64,000 bases of DNA from Orbicella franksi (lineage: Eukaryota): positions 10,044,001 through 10,108,000 of the forward strand of contig OZ116698.1 of the NCBI GenBank assembly GCA_964199315.1, written 5' to 3'. Both the position numbers and the translations under genes were made by a program. Below, piece by piece: positions 48,901 through 60,509 of this stretch (the first letter of the stretch is position 1; each line of letters opens with the position of its first letter). Below the pieces are notes generated by a model. The model saw nothing but the letters and a program-made list of their open reading frames with translations. It did no database searches and was not told the origin of the DNA.

Positions 48901-50672
48901 TAATAAAAAGAGCTTACTGGTAGTTGTGCCAGCTTTAAACAAACCTTTTGGCTCCCCAAAAGTAATGTGCTCCAGAAGGTTAGGACCCTTCAAAAGTAGC
49001 AAGCCCCAAAACCTGCTTATTCCAAAAGTCATGGGAAGGGTCATTACTTCTGGAAATTGACAGTAGTCTGGTCCATGTGAAGTTTATATGAAATAATTCA
49101 TATATGAACTCCATGTTGGCTCCTTCTTGTCTTACAAGAGACAGAACACGCAATGATAGAACACTGCCCCACAAACCTATTGTTTTCATTGTTTTCCACA
49201 TTCTTTTTTTCCTTTTGCTCTCCATTGTTTTACAACACTGCATCTTCTACACCAAGTAAGAGTCTACAAGTTCATGTAAATTATAGCCTGACTATCAGTA
49301 AACAGATGTCAATTATCACAAATAGACTCATTAAATTTTTATTTCTTGTGTTAATCTCAAGATAGATATATCAGACCCCAGTCGAAAGAGATCCTAACTA
49401 AGGACTAACTACAGCATAACCTAACTAACTGAGAGCAACTTAGAACTGCAGAATACTTATTTAAAGTGTCTCTGGATTTTATTTGTAAATATTACTCCTC
49501 CTCAGGCTTTTACAGTTGTGTGGGTGTGATGAGCTGGGTACAAAGTGCAAGCAAGCTTCGAACAAGTGCAAAACACACATAAGGGGTGACAGGTAGGAGA
49601 CTGCACCTCATCTCTTGGGGTGTCCAATTGATGAAATAAACCATTGATGACTATCGATACCAAATGATACCAATCAATAGACCATTTTACAGTTGTCTGC
49701 TCGGTGACCTGGCCTCTGTATGACAGCAAGGCTAGAGTTGACCTTGTTTTGATACAGACCTCAGTGCTTTTGTTGTGTAAAACAAGTTGTTCTGATGCTA
49801 ACTAGGTGCATTTACATTACAAAAGCAGTGAGGTCTGTATCAAAACAAGGTCAACTCTAGCCTCGCTGCCATACAAAGGTCAGGTCACTGAGCAGACAAC
49901 TGTAAAATGGTCTATTAGTAACTTTAAATGAGTTTCCACACTGTCTCTTTTTCTTGTATGCTAAGTGAATCGCTCACCAACATTTTTTTAATTTGGTCAA
50001 CATTTACAAGAACACTCAAGAAGAACAGTTACTAACAGTGGTATGAGGATGTGCAACATGGCATATGCTTTGTGTTGAGAAGTCTGGGTGTGACATATTT
50101 TGCTAATTGATGAACGGCTTTTGTGTGACGTGACCATTGATTGATCATCTATTGACCGATACCAGTGGATGCCAATTAACTAATTTTATGGATTGATATC
50201 GATTGATCGATTGCTTTTCCAATCATCGATTTCCATCGATTGGGGCTCCATTGCATACTGATCGCTTCAACTGATCACCAAATATGTGACACACGTGGTA
50301 TGCAGGTTATGTTCCAGGGTTATGTATATACTTACAACTTCTTCTTCTGTTGCTGTACTGTGGGTAACATAAAGCCACTCGCAATGCTTCTTTTTCTGAT
50401 CTGCAAGCTGATAAATTGTAATTTTTCAGTTAAATCTGAGTCTCTGAGATGCATCACCCAAAACAAAATACATACATACTGGTATATTCTATCCCCTCAT
50501 AGCTAACCTCGGAGAAAACTGAAATCCTTCCAGAGCAGGAGCTTGTGGTAAAATAATCATCTTTAGCATTAATGTATTGTACTAAGTCCACGATTTGGTC
50601 ATCAATGCTTCCTTTCTTACTAAGATCCACCTGCGAAAGACAAGACGCTTTTTGCTCCTCGAAGGCGGCCAT
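42996..50672 (-). CDS. TYW3: tRNA wybutosine-synthesizing protein 3
   Basis: Eight exons: 50508-50672, 50336-50407, 48587-48685, 48382-48453, 47657-47725, 46022-46086, 43684-43751, 42996-43144, giving 252 aa. Motifs DLSKKGSID, TTSSCSGRI, FKFEPFVLHVQC, SGFKNSG and AVRSTQSLEVPL. Confidence 0.95.
44811..45704. mobile_element. MULE-like MITE with 10-bp TSD inserted in the Penelope element
   Basis: TIR GGGT(A/G)..CC.AAAACACTGACCCCC.GTCCGCGGACCCCCAC; identical flanks CTATTTTATC at 44801-44810 and 45705-45714. Confidence 0.85.
44862..45091. mobile_element. MITE nested in the left TIR of the MULE-like element
   Basis: TIR of about 38 bp, GGGG.CCGTTTCTCGAAAGCCCCGGAAACTTTTCGGGCC, at both ends. Confidence 0.85.
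46129..46492. mobile_element. hAT-type MITE with 5-bp TSD
   Basis: TIR CAGGGTTCATAC/GTATGAACCCTG flanked by CTTTG on both sides; internal (GTCATGGAA) repeats. Confidence 0.8.
46504..47010. mobile_element. Tc1/mariner-type MITE
   Basis: TA|CAGTGAAACCT...AGGTTTCACTG termini and repeated GTGTCCGCTTAATAG motifs. Confidence 0.75.
47128..47552. mobile_element. MITE with G-rich/C-rich ends
   Basis: GGGGGGTACTC at the left end and GAGTAACCCCCC at the right end. Confidence 0.55.
49677..49915. mobile_element. near-perfect foldback MITE
   Basis: About 105-bp inverted arms ATAGACCATTTTACAGTTGTCTGCTC...CAGACCTCA around a short spacer. Confidence 0.85.
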
Positions 50673-50802
50673 TTTGAATTTTTCTTACAGGAAATGCTGC
50701 TGAGATTTGAAACCGTGGGCTCTCAGAAGACATTTGGCGCCATTTTGACAGGTCTTCGTCTTTAATCAGGCACCTCGTAAATCTGACATTTTCCTTAAAA
50801 TT

Positions 50803-51045
50803 ATGCTACGAAGAAAGCCCACTCGGATAGAACTGAAAGGAGAGGACGTAGAAGAATACGAGAAAGCAAAAAAGATGTGGACGAAGGATACAAAGAAAGA
50901 CGATGAGGATGTTAAAGCTCAGAGCTTGCTTGATGATTCTCTTCTGGCGTTGAATGATCCAAAGAGGATTTCGAAAATTCACGAGCGAATAGGATACAAG
51001 CCTGAGACTGTACCTAGCGACGGAACAACGACATTCCATTCTTAG
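50803..51045 (+). CDS. CDC26: anaphase-promoting complex subunit CDC26 (APC12)
   Basis: Single-exon 80-aa ORF starting MLRRKPTRIELKGEDVEEYE, the hallmark CDC26 N-terminus. Confidence 0.93.
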   Translation: MLRRKPTRIELKGEDVEEYEKAKKMWTKDTKKDDEDVKAQSLLDDSLLALNDPKRISKIHERIGYKPETVPSDGTTTFHS

Positions 51046-53790: not shown

Positions 53791-54255
53791 TTATACTACA
53801 GTATTTGACCTGTGTCGTGATTTCAAAGATCCGTTAGCATGTGATTTACATTCCGATGTGTCGTTTTGTTTTTTCATGCTTTGGCTGAAACAAACAGGTC
53901 TGTTGCAAGGTTTCTCTGCGTCACAGGATGCAGGGGTCTCCTTTGTGCACCACTCACCGCGCCGATGGCCAGTAAGATGACGAACTACCTCCAATTTCTT
54001 ACATATCTTCGGTTCGTAAGACGAAGTCAGAAGCCTTGCGGAGAGTAATGACTGTAAGGAGCACTTTCTCCTGAACGCCCACTCTTTGTCAAACACAAAC
54101 TCATTATCCGGATCTCGGCCCGATGATTTCGATTTACCAGTTTTTAGTTCGTTATCTTTCGCTACGGTTGCCCCACTGCAATCGTCACTCGAACTTTCAT
54201 CGTCGGGAAGATAATCTTGGTCGCTCACGTGGGTGCTAACACCCAAGTTTTTCAT
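53791..54255 (-). CDS. uncharacterised intronless protein (154 aa), paralog of 57683-57922
   Basis: ATG-initiated ORF with an acidic N-terminus and DNEFVFDKEWAFRRKCSLQSLLSARLL, shared with the neighbouring ORF. Confidence 0.75.
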   Translation of the reverse strand: MKNLGVSTHVSDQDYLPDDESSSDDCSGATVAKDNELKTGKSKSSGRDPDNEFVFDKEWAFRRKCSLQSLLSARLLTSSYEPKICKKLEVVRHLTGHRRGEWCTKETPASCDAEKPCNRPVCFSQSMKKQNDTSECKSHANGSLKSRHRSNTVV

Positions 54256-55164
54256 GATTTTGTTCTGGAATCAAATGCCGCTACAACGCGCCGAAAAGCG
54301 AAACTTTCGTGCAAAACAAAACAACAAAAACAAAGGTTTTCCTTCTGATGTGATCTAAACGAGATTCGCTGTTGATGTCTTTAGAATTAGCCGGGAATTA
54401 GCATAACAACAGCGTTCTTTTTTGCTGTTATTAGCTGACAAAGAGCTAGAACGCTCCAGAGAGTAAACAGTTTAAATAATTTGATACGGCCTGAACAATA
54501 ATCCAAACATTTAAATTTTAAGCTAAAAGGACTATTTACCAAACTATTGGGAAAATATAAATATACCAGAGGACTTTTACAAATTTTAAGGTATATGGGG
54601 CAATACACTTCACGGCTGAAGGTAAAAGAACGTCAAATTGTAGCAACCTATCACCGCATACATTCATTATATATTTAGCGGTACGTTCCCAGAATTGTAA
54701 AGGAAAACCGTTCCCCGCCAAAATAAGTTCTTCCAAGCACGATCCCGCGAAGCCTTAGGATAAATGTGGATTTCTCTAGAAGTTTAAAACGTCGAAAAAC
54801 TCCTAGAAACGAATTAGACATCGCCCAGCTGGTTTTAAAGAATTATTTCTCAAAATAAGGGAGACTGGAAAAGAACAAAAAAAAATCCACATTTCGATTT
54901 ATTTTGATTGTTAGGAATTATTTATAGGCTTCAGCCAAGAGATAGGAAAGGGCGGCGCAAAGGCGGCGCAAACTTTCATCTGCATGCATTTATAAAATCA
55001 CTCGATTCACCCGAAGCTGGTACAATGCCCAGCTGATCTCTAATTTTGTTTCGCCGTAGACAAGGTAAATTAACGTTTTCTAGGGCAAGGAGATAGGAGG
55101 TAGGGAAGATTACTTTTTGTTATTTCCTGCGTTGCTCTACTACGCCCTACATTTAGTGAGTCTA

Positions 55165-55907
55165 GGCCCTTTGCATGACCGTGTCACGTGACTTTGTCAA
55201 TCATAGAAAATGGTCGTCGTACGAAGAGAGTGTTGAAATGTTTAGTAGGATTTCTAATTTTGATGCCATTGACGTTTTGGTGCGAAATTTTAAGACAGTA
55301 TGATGCTGGATTGCAAAACTTGTCGTCCCGCGTCCAGCAGCGTTTTTCTTTACAAGTTTTGTTAATTTTTTAAAGCCTCTAAATAGCCGTAACATCTCAA
55401 ACTTTAGCGTCAGTGGCCTCAAAATTGGAAACCGAAAAAGGTTCATCGCGCCCTTTCCACTTCTGGTATTTATTTCGTACCACAACCATTTTCATCAGTG
55501 TTTGACAAGGTCAAGTGACACGGTCATGCAAAGGGCCCCGTCCACACCTAAGCCGGAGGAATTTGAAAACGCAGCTAGTTCTACTGTTAGGCCTCCCGTC
55601 CACACTAATCCGTCACCAAAACGAAGCTTTTCGAAAACGCTCCTCAAACCTGAGGAATTTGAAAACACCGGCTTTTCGTTTTCGTGTGGAAAGAAAACGT
55701 GTTGAAAACGGAGTTTTTCGAAAACTATGGTGTCACGATATCATGTGATTTCCCTGACCGAGTTTTCCTCAAACACAAATCCAAAATGACCGGTGATTGC
55801 TGCTTTTTAAATTCCTCCGGCGCAGTGTGGACGGAAAACATTTGATGCGGCGTTTTCAGAGTGAAACCTCCGTTTTCAAATTCCTCCGGCTTAGCGTGGA
55901 CGGGGCC
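55165..55907. mobile_element. two fused GGCC-ended MITEs (PIF/Harbinger-like)
   Basis: Element A 55165-55537 (TIR GGCCCTTTGCATGACCGTGTCAC) and element B 55534-55907 (TIR GGCCCCGTCCAC..TAAGCCGGAGGAATTTGAAAACG) share one GGCC. Confidence 0.75.
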
Positions 55908-56185
55908 TTAGTTGATTAGCGTAAAGTTCGTACTAACTTCGCGCGGACTTCGCGTGCAAAAACAAAATGCTCATGAACAACCTTTGGTTTACAGACTCAA
56001 TACCTACCACTTCTTTATGTGTTTATTCTAGATCTTCACTGACGGAATAACCGCCTGTTAATCTCAAACAATTAATGTGAAAGTATTCAGTTCGATAAAT
56101 GCATGCCATGAGCTTTCTACATCTTGAAATTTTGGAGTTACAAGTCACGATTTTTCGAGGATTCCCACCTTCTTTAGCTTGTTCC

Positions 56186-56327
56186 AGGCTCTCGGTCAGT
56201 GGGGACGGTCGGAAATCGGGCGGGCGACAAGCGACGAGAGGGGTCTCCCGAATCCCGCTCGGTGCTGATCCCGCTCGTCGCCCGCCCGCTTTTTCGATCG
56301 TCCCCACTAACCGAGAGCCTGGAACAT
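56186..56327. mobile_element. short MITE
   Basis: TIR TGTTCCAGGCTCTCGGT.AGTGGGGACG at both ends. Confidence 0.75.
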
Positions 56328-57000
56328 GTTACGCCTTCTCTGTCTCACTATAATGGACGGAGCTTCACACCCAAACAGAAAAAAAAGAGTCAGTGATATA
56401 ATCATAGGTTATTGAACTTGCGTTAGGTCCGTATTGGAGAAATATTGGTCGAGTTCTTTTTTCTTTATGGTTTACAGACGGAGCCGGTCGGCAATGCAAT
56501 GAAAAAGTTAGTGAGGGATTCGTCTTGGCTGTCAGTATTTTAAAATTCAGACCGCTAAGGGAACTGATCAGAAACTCCTTTTCATCACTATCGCGGACCA
56601 GTTCAGCGATATAAAAAATACCCTAAAACATTCAGTTTGCATTAATTTCACGTGGGATCTTTGGTTCAGCCGCACTTCGCACGCAACTTTCGCACTTTCG
56701 CCAATTGTCCAATTCAACCATTGCCGTATCTCGAGGAGAAAAAGAAGACCCTAGTATGAAGCCCTTTTTGGGTTTGAAACTTGCCATCTCGGGATATTTG
56801 GGGGTAAGAAAGTTTTAATTTGTGGTAACTTTTTTCAAACCGAATATTCTAGCAGTCATTTACATACACGTAAACTAAATGCAAATGCAAGCCGCCTTTA
56901 AGTTTTATGCTTAGAAAAAAAGGATCGTTGTTTTTTTTTGTTTTTGTTTTTTCATTCTCACAGTCTCTGCAACTGATATCCCTTAGTCTCTCCCAACCAG

Positions 57001-57230
57001 AGTCAAGTCAAGTCAAGGCAAGTCAAGTCAACTTTATTTCACAGCACTTCAACGAATAAACTGATCATGAATTTGGAAATTCCATGAACAAAGAAATTTA
57101 ACTGTGTATCAACCTTGTACAACCGCTTCCTTCCCTCATAACTGATAGCATAGACCACGAAAGATTCAACTCATTGTTCCTTATCATTTTCCTTAGCCAT
57201 TTGAGATCATTGTTTTCTAAACTATGTATA
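57001..57230 (-). mobile_element. retroelement 3' end with (GACTT)n tail
   Basis: On the - strand, AATAAA is directly followed by tandem GACTT units (AAGTC on +). Confidence 0.55.
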
Positions 57231-57682
57231 TATTGTTTTATGTAAAAAACTACAGTTTCACTTCCGGAGAGAGCAGAAAATCAAGATGTCAACTCCCTTG
57301 AAAAGAGGTATAAATAGACTTCTTTCCCAAAACCACAATTAAGCGTCCGCCTTTCTAACCAAAAGTGATAATATTAGCTTCGTCCATTGTTCATGTTTCT
57401 AATTCGGACGCTGTCTTCATGCCTGTATTATATCTTGGCTCTCAGTTGAGTAAATTGACAGTTCGATGATCAATATTTCTCGTGCCAAACTATTCTCATC
57501 GTATTTCGTCATTCCAAGATCAGGTATTATTCTCGTGAGTTAATATGTTTCTCAAACAACTCTTGCGTCCTTCGATGAGCGCAACAATGTCATAATTTCT
57601 CGTATTGAGAAAATATCAGTCACCGACATTGTTTTTTATTCACCGATCAGTGTGACTAAGGCCGTCATCAAGCCAAACAACT

Positions 57683-57922
57683 TTACGAAAGAGCAGTCTT
57701 CATTTTGCCCTCCAACCGTAGCAGCAATCGAGAATAAAGAAGCGAAGACAAGCTGTACCTTCTCTTCAAAGCCCACTCCGTGTCAAAAACACATTCGTTC
57801 TCAGCCGTGGTTTCTACAATGTCTTGATGAATTTGTCCAGTGTGAATGTCGTCGCGGCTCAACGAACTCTCACTGATGTCGGATTCGTCATCGGCGAAAC
57901 ACTCTTCGTACGACGCGTCCAT
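57683..57922 (-). CDS. uncharacterised intronless protein (79 aa), paralog of 53791-54255
   Basis: AAAATG start, acidic N-terminus, and ENECVFDTEWALKRRYSLSSLLYSRLL. Confidence 0.72.
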   Translation of the reverse strand: MDASYEECFADDESDISESSLSRDDIHTGQIHQDIVETTAENECVFDTEWALKRRYSLSSLLYSRLLLRLEGKMKTALS

Positions 57923-60509
57923 TTTCTCGAAGTGCTGTAATGAAATTGCTACCTCCTTCGCTCTCTTGAAGTTTTAACTGCTCCTCAGAGGTCCTCAAAC
58001 GTCAGAGCGCCGGAATCGTTCAAGGTCTAGTTTCGTTTCGAGCTGTAAAACGCTTGAACTGCAAATGTTAATGTCGCACTCAGCGCCCACGGGGGTGTTT
58101 AAAAAGTCACGGGTTTTCCTGTGATCATTTGCCAGAAAATGCTAGACCGACGGAAGGGGCGGAATTGCAACAAGGTAATTAGGCTCATTTTATTGTCAAA
58201 ATTGCGCCAAAATAAACCGCAAAGACAAAACTAAACTACAGAGAAGAAATCCGACGTTTCTGGCATAGTTCAGTAACTTATTGAGAACAGGTTGCGTTTA
58301 ACATTTTTCTGCGTGCGTTTTTATTCTCAGCAACATAATTTTGCTTTAAACATCGAAGAGGGAAGCCCGGGGAGGGAAGCAAATAACTGGGGGTTTAGGG
58401 GGGGTTGGGGAGAGATTGTGATCTCGTTTCACGCACAAATTTTGCAAAATTCACTCGTTTTACATACTTTTATATATTAGCTGCTTTTAACGACGTTTTC
58501 ATATTTCATAAATTCTCGTGTCACTTATGTTTTTTAGTTGCTTTTCACGCGTTGCACACTAATTTTTTGCCCTCGTCACGTTCCGCACATGAGCCCTTTA
58601 TTTTCCCCTTTGCCAATGGTTCATAAAAAGCGTAGAAAATTCGCAAGTTACGTACATGCCAGTATTTGTTTTCGATTCAATCCCCCATTAAGTGCAGGTT
58701 CTATGGCCATTGTCGACAAGGTAAAGAAAATGAAAATTCTCACCATTTTACTGCGAGTGTGAAGCGTTATTATATAAGGCTGGGCTCGTTGACGAACATG
58801 CAAAAAATAAATACAAGAAATAAAGGAAACTGGTGTGCTATCGAAGGCAAGGCCCAGAAATAATCAAGTTTTAAGTGTACAGTTATATAAATATTTTATC
58901 GAAGACGGACTCAATTTTATACATCATTTCCATCTTCCTTTGTTAAAAATTTCTATTTTGCATCATATCTATTTATTTATTTGTTAAATAAGCGGAGTAC
59001 TTCTCAGTGCTGTGGTTGATTTTAATGTTCTTAGGATAAGCTCGCCTAATTTATGGATTCAGTTGTACTTCTCGTTTCCACCAATGCTCGGCTGTCGGGA
59101 CTGAATCTATAGGTACAGCAGTCTGACGAGCATTCCGTCTACTTTAAACTCCGCGTCCACAGGCCTGCGTCCGTCTAAACATACCTTAAAAAATTTACGG
59201 TAGTAAGTAGGACGGGTTAATTAGTGGCCACTTAGGCGCCATTTTGTGAACCCACAGTGCCTAGTACCAGTTCTTCTCAAACCTCTTTCAAGATGGCGGT
59301 CGACCCCTCGTCCGCCATCAATTGGAAAGACGATAGGAACGAGGTTGCTCTTTCTCGACAGAATTTTCTCCCAACACTCGACCAGAGAACCGTCTGATCA
59401 TGAGGACTCTAAGGGTCAATTTTTAACAGATATTCGACGGTGTTTTCGTCTAGTGGATGTCAAAACTCGTCGACTTAGACACGGCAGATGAAGTAAACGG
59501 GTAAATTTTGACGAGTTTTCCGTCAAAAACCTGCCCCGTCCCATTTTCTTGTTATGTTTCTCATCCAAATAATGTGAATTGGGCCGATCTCTACGATGTT
59601 TAGTCTCTCTGGGCTTTTTTTCCCAACTGGTCAATAAAACACTATTCATGCACGACTTCCGGGACGACCTATATTTGGTTTAATTTTGGTATTTTGCAGT
59701 AGGAAGGGAAAACGGTCCTCGATCCTTTTCCTCTGAAAAAACACGCTCCAAAACGTTTCCGGGCAACAATATTGCAATTTCTATCATCATTGTTCTATTT
59801 TTCTTTTTTTTCTTTCTTTTTTTTTTTTTACTGCTCTGCCGAGAACTTGGCAGTTTTAAGATCCTTTCTCAGTTCACTCTAGGACCATCCGCATATGAGT
59901 GTCACTGTCAGCAGAGAGTGCAGAGTCTATAACTGTGGTGTCCATTTACTCAATTATGTAAACCGTCGCGGCGGCTAATGTTTTTCTTTTTCCTTCTTTT
60001 TATTCCCGATCCCGTCTGCCGAGTCGTATTGTTAACTACATTAAGTATCAATTATTTTCAGTGGAGTTTGGAAATTACTCTTGGGCCGCGCCAATCCGTC
60101 AAAAAGAAATTCGAAGTCCAGTGATGTACAAAGGAATTCAACACCTGCTCGAAGGCTCAACAGTGTCAACAGTTCCAACAGTGGCTTTGTTTTGAACGGC
60201 CGCATCCTGCCGCTTTTACTTTTGGCCCATGTCCTGCTCCACTCAAAATTAATTGCACTCGCACCCTTGTCTATGCTCTACAAGACCAGAAATAACCCAG
60301 CAATATGTAGATAAAGCCAAGTTTCACCCAGTTAATAATTATTATTCTTCCACACGCTCATCTGGACATGCTTTTAAAGTATTCCCATCGTTAAGCCTCC
60401 TATCTACAGGAGTAAAACAGATTGCCCAGTCATGTAGTATTGGCAGAATCGTTTGTGTCTTTCAAAGAAGCTATTTTTACGATTTATTACTTATGTTTGC
60501 GATTTATTA

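Follow-up and report, generated by a model that had tools for sequence, protein, structure and literature searches.

The 64,000 nucleotides of Orbicella franksi DNA analysed here (the window) carry two old paralogues, ORF154 (A type) and ORF79 (B type), that belong, judged by their sequences, to an unnamed family lacking any known domain. This previously unnamed and unannotated protein family is defined here. In our best reading, which we consider moderately probable, its members are coral-restricted, small, disordered linear-motif adaptors or regulators that dock through a helix and are controlled by a phospho-switch. The two genes are:

53791..54255, minus strand: A-type gene (ORF154), complete coding sequence of 154 aa, C-terminus and stop conserved (ORF list, orthologues, dN/dS)
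57683..57922, minus strand: B-type gene (ORF79), complete coding sequence of 79 aa (ORF list, orthologues, dN/dS)

A preliminary description of this DNA had reported two same-strand ORFs of 154 and 79 aa about 3.4 kb apart, and both were found at these coordinates on the minus strand, separated by 3,427 nt. ORF154 is the sole ATG ORF of at least 100 aa within 18 kb, and the family defined by the conserved block described below has two copies in the 64-kb window. Orthologues of the A-type ORF154 include 24 database proteins that are full length and share 46-100% identity. Those of the B-type ORF79 include 33, also full length and with the C-terminal end kept. Full-length preservation of each ORF in that many database proteins (24 and 33, respectively) excludes a chance origin. 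Furthermore, reading frames, starts and stops of both ORFs are preserved over dozens of species. As this conservation argues, ORF154 and ORF79 are genuine genes.

Two elements are common to both proteins:

54028..54105, minus strand: conserved 26-residue block of the A protein, N51-L76, NEFVFDKEWAFRRKCSLQSLLSARLL (column counts, dN/dS)
57722..57799, minus strand: conserved 26-residue block of the B protein, N42-L67, NECVFDTEWALKRRYSLSSLLYSRLL (column counts, dN/dS)
54193..54213, minus strand: N-terminal acidic motif of the A protein, Y15-S21, YLPDDES (column counts in 40 sequences)
57881..57901, minus strand: N-terminal acidic motif of the B protein, C8-S14, CFADDES (25 B-type proteins)

The common block, first described as about 27 aa long, is present in ORF154 and ORF79 with 26 residues and the consensus NExVFDxEWAxxRxx[S/T]LxSLLxx[R/K]LL. 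BLASTP aligns residues 16-62 of ORF154 with residues 9-53 of ORF79 (E = 5e-5). The block DNAs of the two ORFs differ at many synonymous positions, for instance TCC/AGC for Ser, TTA/CTT for Leu and AGG/CGA for Arg, and the likeness therefore lies at the protein level. In an alignment of 40 sequences (A numbering), N51, V54, S69 and L70 never vary, and conservation of F55, D56, W59, R63 and L67 is at least 90%. The acidic, DDES-containing N-terminus attributed to each ORF was also recovered, its common form being [Y/C]x[P/A]DDES. In this motif of the A protein (local pLDDT of 70 with AlphaFold2), D18 and E20 are each kept in 39/40 sequences and D19 and S21 each in 34/40. Among 25 B-type proteins, E7, C8, F9, A10, D11, E13 and S14 are invariant.

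The purifying selection that had been deduced for the block is strong. Its dN/dS is 0-0.02 in A (dN 0.016 and dS 0.79 against Oculina) and 0-0.25 in B, the latter from few changes, versus 0.27-0.75 outside the block. Over whole ORFs, dN/dS reaches 0.22-0.47 for A and 0.31-0.50 for B. Synonymous divergence together with a dN/dS of about 0.02 argues against conservation of the ORFs as RNA or regulatory elements.

The family has so far been seen only in stony corals, according to every named source of its sequences; both genes have full-length orthologues in many of these corals, the named species being Oculina patagonica, Desmophyllum pertusum and Acropora cervicornis. A block profile was run over 1.84 billion proteins and returned small family members only (21 matches, 51-258 aa). 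Neither ORF has a Pfam match at E up to 10, no consistent match emerged when 40 family members were compared with Pfam at E up to 1, and the PDB profile search gave only a noise match to plexin-D1 (E = 2.2). In this sense, the term orphan, applied to the pair from its letters, is appropriate. Moreover, a full-text literature search with the block peptides matched no paper. Gene models of the family are present in only three GenBank coral assemblies, and one of these models looks mis-spliced.

The genes are arranged in the order B, A, CDC26 (encoded on the opposite strand) and TYW3, and this arrangement is kept in the window, in L022, in L024 and in Acropora (L019). The A and B clades separate with 99/97 support, and Acropora holds one gene of each type. 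The A/B duplication is older than the split between Acropora and robust corals. An apparent second copy of the gene pair in L025 was rejected as an exact 2x circular-assembly artefact. The most distant members are P0056, P0060, P0063, P0064, P0065, P0067 and P0070. P0060 is without a CDC26 neighbour, the P0067 contigs contain no second family member, and P0070 has neither the Arg nor the Ser of the putative kinase site considered below.

Both proteins are predicted to be mostly disordered, with one helix over the block:

54022..54087, minus strand: predicted single alpha-helix of the A protein, residues 57-78 (AlphaFold2, 40-sequence alignment)
57689..57781, minus strand: predicted alpha-helix of the B protein, residues 48-78, to the C-terminus (AlphaFold2, 30-sequence alignment)

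AlphaFold confidence is modest for the helix (pLDDT 65-86, pTM 0.19-0.26) and low for the remainder of the proteins. The helix has a pLDDT of about 65-70 in the A model (mean pLDDT 56, pTM 0.19) and of 70-86 in the B model. Neither protein has a signal peptide or a cysteine framework, and both are predicted to be intracellular.

The adaptor or regulator reading pictures small (about 80-170 aa), intronless, intrinsically disordered proteins built on two constrained elements. The first would be the N-terminal acidic serine motif x-[Y/C]-x-[P/A]-D-D-E-S, which resembles a casein-kinase-2 site. The second would consist of an extended acidic/aromatic piece, N-E-x-V-F-D-x-x-W, followed by a basic amphipathic helix, R-x-x-[S/T]-L-x-S-L-L-x-x-[R/K]-L-L. 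The helix and the preceding aromatic residues would dock on a conserved cellular partner, DDB1 being one candidate among several. Phosphorylation of a site with a hydrophobic residue at -5, R at -3, S/T at 0 and L at +1 and +4 would probably switch this docking, the putative phosphosite being located at the start of the most conserved turns. The PKA-type site noticed earlier is indeed kept as a sequence pattern: the basophilic (AGC/CAMK-type) kinase consensus is found with R63 (-3) in 37/40 sequences, S/T66 (0) in 39/40 and L/M67 (+1) in 40/40, and with flanking hydrophobic residues F/L/W/M61 (-5) in 38/40 and L70 (+4) in 40/40. The genes, the selection on them, their transcription, the predicted disorder with a helix and the lack of a known domain are shown; we infer the docking function, the phospho-switch and any partner from the anatomy of the proteins.

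The preliminary description had read the helix S-L-x-S-L-L-x-x-R-L-L as a DDB1-binding H-box and the proteins as WD40-less CRL4 adaptors or decoys, perhaps phospho-switched, which we consider unlikely. The block is predicted to be helical in both A (57-78) and B (48-78), and there are small viral proteins that rely on an H-box while having no WD40 domain. Type-conserved positions of the H-box are L or V at 7, R at 10 and L/I/V at 12, and the helix-breaking Gly at position 13 is a less stringent feature (PMC9975947). DCAF1 loses its binding to DDB1 when the corresponding L and R, which are three residues apart, are mutated (PMC3928422). The coral block fits three of the four type-conserved positions, i.e. 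7 (L71, with L in 32 sequences, I in 7 and M in 1), 10 (R74, with R in 30 and K in 10) and 12 (L76, with L in 34/40). The misfit is the terminal Gly, which is missing: the five commonest residues at position 77 of the 40 sequences are T (15), S (6), L (5), V (5) and A (2). Moreover, the helix is predicted to continue, by about 12 residues in B-type proteins. L-x-x-R-x-L is also a pattern of low information in a Leu/Arg-rich helix, and the match carries little weight because the DDB1 cleft is plastic, which 'impedes sequence-based prediction' of binders (PMC9975947).

A language-model atlas gave weak matches of ORF154 to WD40, DCAF8 and DCAF12 fragments (scores 0.79-0.85). However, these scores lie within the range of shuffled proteins and the matches were not repeated with ORF79, which retrieved unnamed arthropod clusters only, or with the block alone, which retrieved PRP4 at 0.74, both again within the range of the shuffled controls. 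Furthermore, no DCAF or WD40 protein was among the matches of the profile search over 1.84 billion proteins, the PDB search or Pfam, and these searches revealed neither a WD40 propeller with WDxR motifs nor DCAF homology, one of which defines a DCAF. An H-box would also leave unexplained the N-terminal motif and the NExVFDxxW piece, which is equally conserved. In its full form, this reading would have stony corals carrying two ancient 'H-box-only', WD40-less, phospho-switchable decoys or mini-adaptors in the CRL4 DDB1 cleft, like HBx and UL145, and we give it a small chance. If DDB1 were the partner, corals would themselves encode an unusual CRL4 decoy, a host counterpart to a strategy seen until now mainly in viruses.

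Also of low probability is a role as small nuclear co-regulators, in which an activation-domain-like surface, formed by the acidic/aromatic pieces, would be combined with the L-x-x-L-L / L-x-x-x-L-x-x-x-L helix, preceded by R-R-x-S, as a counterpart of an NR-box or a CREB KID-type phospho-helix, or in which B would alternatively carry a leucine-rich nuclear export signal. Compared with the consensus motifs of KID, NR-box and export signals, L67-x-x-L70-L71 and L67-x3-L71-x3-L75 are conserved, and acidic tracts bearing F, W and Y adjoin these Leu motifs and the Leu-rich helix. However, these are motif matches alone, and Thr or Ser occupies the fourth hydrophobic position of the export signal in the majority of A-type proteins. 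It is quite doubtful that the block is a basic amphipathic helix for binding a Ca2+ sensor, calmodulin or a different one, in which an upstream Trp would serve as anchor and a regulatory phosphosite would lie adjacent. The rule for calmodulin targets associates a basic amphipathic helix with hydrophobic anchors at 1-5-10 spacing. The predicted helix has a net charge of about +4 over K57-L76, W59, L67, L71 and L76 are conserved, and L67, L71 and L76 show this spacing. Here again, however, the pattern is of low information, no homology to known targets appeared in the Pfam, profile and PDB searches, and neither the S69 that never varies nor the acidic NExVFD piece is typical of such sites.

Transcription was traced through contigs, which suggest the following leaders:

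54256..54490, minus strand: probable 5' UTR of the A gene, transcript start probably near 54448-54490 (starts of L003, L004 and L005)
57923..58121, minus strand: probable 5' UTR of the B gene, transcript start probably near 58077-58121 (starts of L009, L010, L014 and L016)

In Acropora, both genes are transcribed and unspliced. The contig L021, which starts 130 nt before the B start codon, derives from RNA since the TYW3 introns are removed relative to the genomic L019, and it contains both ORFs in genome-collinear form. In the window species, the independent, genome-collinear A-gene contigs L003, L004 and L005 start at 54486, 54448 and 54490, respectively, and a TATA-like A/T-rich stretch lies about 20-33 nt upstream of the putative transcript start. 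The B-gene contigs L009, L010, L014 and L016 start at 58077, 58086, 58114 and 58121. The window-species contigs have sharp common ends and one reads into sequencing adapter; these transcript-type contigs are genome-collinear and, taken alone, indistinguishable from DNA. The qualification of the pair as intronless thus holds as far as visible.

It is very unlikely, and already largely refuted, that the ORFs are not independent protein genes but conserved upstream or leader sequences of a long transcript extending to TYW3, or have arisen by chance within non-coding DNA that is conserved. In the Acropora contig L021, the B and A genes are indeed joined on one strand with CDC26 in antisense and TYW3 in spliced form, but assemblers commonly merge overlapping transcripts. 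In addition, the window-species contigs begin 150-235 nt upstream of each ORF and halt about 65 nt before the TYW3 start codon (50672). The codon signal is clear, with a block dN/dS of 0.02 at dS 0.79, and frames, starts and stops are kept.

Several other candidates were rejected: an initial exon of a WD40 gene (both C-termini and stop codons are preserved, and transcript contigs align collinearly with genomic DNA), a transposon or viral origin (two copies per genome, fixed synteny) and a secreted skeletal protein (no signal peptide). The Elongin BC box (SOCS/VHL box), whose consensus [S/T/P]-L-x-x-x-[C/S/A]-x-x-x-hydrophobic calls for a small sixth residue, was rejected as this position (S66-L67-x-x-x-L71) is L, I or M in 40/40 sequences. 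The GoLoco/GPR motif was rejected as well, with no Pfam match at E up to 10 and the D-[D/E]-Q-R triad in no member. Among the Elongin BC box, GoLoco, FFAT, LIR, D-box and cyclin RxL motifs, none suits both paralogues.

The pair already existed in synteny before the two main stony-coral lineages parted and has been retained ever since, and the rate at which its 26-residue module evolves is about as low as that of a core enzyme site. When a disordered protein carries a module of this kind, it is usually a sign that a conserved partner is bound tightly, and the gene pair is therefore a tractable entry to coral-specific regulation. As it stands, we regard it as a solid new orphan family of moderate interest.

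Like the H-box of DCAFs and viral hijackers (HBx, SV5-V, HCMV UL145), the coral module includes a short helix in which Leu, Arg and Leu are spaced like H-box positions 7, 10 and 12 and, like the viral H-box proteins, the coral proteins are small and without WD40 propeller. Unlike an H-box, the coral block is without the Gly helix-breaker at 13 and the B-type helix continues; the module is twice as long, adds NExVFDxxW upstream and comes with no detectable DCAF homology. CREB KID and the PKA inhibitor PKI are phospho-regulated docking helices of disordered regulators. As in CREB KID, where an RRPS site precedes an amphipathic helix, and in PKI, a basophilic kinase consensus lies ahead of the helix or starts it in a disordered protein; however, there is no sequence homology and the family is coral-restricted. 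Small cysteine-rich proteins and acid-rich skeletal proteins are taxonomically restricted small proteins of corals. A and B resemble them in being short, lineage-restricted, without annotation in most coral gene sets and without Pfam domain, but have no signal peptide or cysteine framework, are predicted to be intracellular and disordered with one helix and, instead of an expanding cluster, form a pair in conserved synteny.

The window carries two paralogous ORFs on the minus strand, the A and B genes. They are 3,427 nt apart and have in common a 26-residue block, NExVFDxEWAxxRxx[S/T]LxSLLxx[R/K]LL. The features of this region are:

50454-50672, minus strand: first exon of TYW3 (PF02676)
50803-51045, plus strand: CDC26, 80 aa (PF10471)
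53791-54255, minus strand: A gene, ORF of 154 aa, block at residues 51-76
57683-57922, minus strand: B gene, ORF of 79 aa, block at residues 42-67

The preliminary description had reported two same-strand ORFs of these lengths, a common block and a DDES-containing acidic N-terminus in each, and all of these were recovered. The N-terminal motif reads YLPDDES in A and CFADDES in B, and BLASTP aligns A 16-62 with B 9-53 (E = 5e-5). A six-frame motif scan of the window finds the block only in A and B, and A is the sole ATG ORF of at least 100 aa in the last 18 kb. The DNA of the two blocks differs by many synonymous changes (for instance TCC/AGC for serine and AGG/CGA for arginine), indicating that conservation acts at the protein level. 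The purifying selection previously proposed for the block is borne out by dN/dS (Nei-Gojobori estimates from the window genes codon-aligned to their orthologues in contigs L001, L022 and L024, in L026 of Oculina and in L019 of Acropora). The ratio is 0.00-0.02 in the A block (dN 0.016 and dS 0.79 against Oculina) and 0-0.25 in the B block, versus 0.27-0.75 elsewhere (0.27-0.60 in A, 0.38-0.75 in B). Against Acropora, block dN is merely 0.11-0.16, with synonymous sites saturated.

A word-index search matched A to 24 proteins and B to 33, of which nearly all are full length. Named matches are hypothetical proteins of Oculina patagonica (G003356, G003362) and Desmophyllum pertusum; a cluster look-up added P5673_010249 of Acropora cervicornis. 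Starts, C-terminal ends and stops are all kept in both family alignments. A profile search with both families gathered 76 proteins, whose named sources are stony corals only. Where database entries are longer, this stems from upstream extension or read-through in the ORF call, and no extra domain is gained. Furthermore, the window, Acropora L019 and a further two assemblies of the robust clade (L022, L024) all have the gene order B, A, CDC26 (opposite strand), TYW3, and in Acropora a 165-aa ORF adjoining the B gene has an A-type block. In a maximum-likelihood tree the A and B clades separate with 99/97 support, each of them including one Acropora member; the duplication is therefore older than the complex/robust coral split. 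These sequence comparisons show A and B to be real, old genes. Three distant proteins (P0064, P0065, P0113) branch basally in the A clade yet have a B-like 'YSR' helix and a 'CPADDED' N-terminal motif; they may represent the pre-duplication state or else another anthozoan group. In L025 (ERZ25067879 ctg68488_25x_c), the gene pair is present twice at 100% identity with a period of 9,995 nt, and this second pair was rejected as a circular-assembly artefact.

Transcription of both genes is seen indirectly, from assembled contigs. The Acropora JGI contig L021 lacks seven TYW3 introns found in genomic L019 and therefore derives from RNA. Its sequence, which includes both ORFs collinearly with the genome, begins 130 nt ahead of the B start codon. 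This single contig (1-7642, versus L019 9871-19998) spans B, A, antisense CDC26 and fully spliced TYW3, reflecting either overlapping or read-through transcripts or the merging of overlapping mRNAs by the assembler. Contigs of the window species also begin ahead of each ORF: three, all of different samples, at 54448-54490 (193-235 nt before the ATG of A) and four at 58077-58121 (155-199 nt before that of B). The three A contigs end at 50738-50741 or 51240. One passes directly into Illumina adapter at 50741. This points to a fixed end of the molecule, for which the 5' end of the convergent CDC26 mRNA is the simplest candidate; the ends at 50738-50741 are probably that 5' end. CDC26 and TYW3 lie head to head (50454-51045) with 130 nt between start codons, and this interval is likely a bidirectional promoter. 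Since no contig is spliced within A or B, both genes appear intronless, as first described. In the Oculina patagonica A gene (GCA_052425735.1, L026 10001-10686), the 139-aa NCBI model ACROYT_G003356 has an intron in place of the conserved C-terminus. The genome keeps an uninterrupted 155-aa ORF at L026 10001-10468, so this model is probably wrong (mis-spliced). Between B and A, DNA-type contigs of several samples break at 55559-55615 and 56269-56436. ORFs in 55500-56430 resemble dispersed coral repeats, and no tandem array was found beyond a 31-nt AGTCA run at 57001-57031.

Given the family alignments, AlphaFold2 predicts both proteins to be disordered except for a single helix: residues 57-78 in A (pLDDT about 65-70, mean 56, pTM 0.19) and residues 48-78, up to the C-terminus, in B (pLDDT 70-86). 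Over 40 family sequences, the conserved columns of the block are N51, V54, L/M67, S69, L70, L/I/M71 and R/K74 (40 each), D56, W59 and S/T66 (39), F55 (38), R63 and L/F75 (37), E52 and A60 (35) and L76 (34). These counts divide the module into two halves, the first acidic/aromatic (N-E-x-V-F-D-x-x-W) and the second a basic amphipathic helix. Of the N-terminal motif, 39/40 sequences keep D18, 39/40 keep E20 and 34/40 keep S21. Basophilic AGC/CAMK-type kinases prefer a hydrophobic residue at -5, R at -3, S/T at 0 and L at +1 and +4, and the block fits this consensus (hydrophobic at -5 in 38/40).

Neither ORF has a Pfam match, even with E allowed up to 10, and 40 family members yield nothing consistent. 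A 42-column block profile retrieves 21 proteins of 51-258 aa and uniform architecture from all 1.84 billion representative proteins, with no WD40 protein or DCAF among them, and only a noise match from all PDB chains. The best reading of the family is that of stony-coral-restricted small disordered adaptors or regulators. The single tightly constrained module would dock onto a conserved partner, and the conserved serine of the kinase consensus, which opens the best-kept turns of the helix, would be a likely switch. Established here are the genes, the selection on them, their transcription and their predicted architecture, from which docking and the switch are inferred.

The preliminary description had a more specific, admittedly speculative idea, namely that the block is a DDB1-binding H-box and the proteins CRL4 adaptors or decoys. 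The H-box is a short helix of low sequence conservation, with merely four positions type-conserved above 60% (L/V 7, R 10, L/I/V 12 and a helix-breaking G 13), and the plasticity of the DDB1 cleft 'impedes sequence-based prediction' (PMC9975947). In DCAF1, mutation of an L and an R three residues apart abolishes DDB1 binding (PMC3928422). In the coral block, L71, R/K74 and L76 correspond to positions 7, 10 and 12, which makes three fits out of four. However, position 13 is T/S/L/V/A, with G not among the five commonest residues, and the predicted B-type helix goes on for about 12 residues past the H-box-like part. Moreover, L-x-x-R-x-L is fairly often expected by chance in a Leu/Arg-rich helix, and the other half of the module stays unexplained. 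A language-model atlas relates ORF154 to WD40, DCAF8 and DCAF12 fragments, but at scores (0.79-0.85) that one third of shuffled proteins reach, and this lead was not repeated with ORF79 or the block alone. An H-box seems an unlikely, unsupported identity for the block; if confirmed, it would raise the interest of the family beyond moderate. A calmodulin-type basic amphipathic helix is likewise improbable, and we also doubt a nuclear co-regulator or export-signal helix; like the H-box, each is built on low-information motif matches. A reading in which A and B are something other than independent protein genes is very improbable.

The family is unnamed, lacks a Pfam model and is absent from the literature (a full-text search for the block peptides found no occurrence), and most coral annotations miss it. 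Small disordered proteins that carry a linear motif and are confined to one lineage are already a familiar kind.
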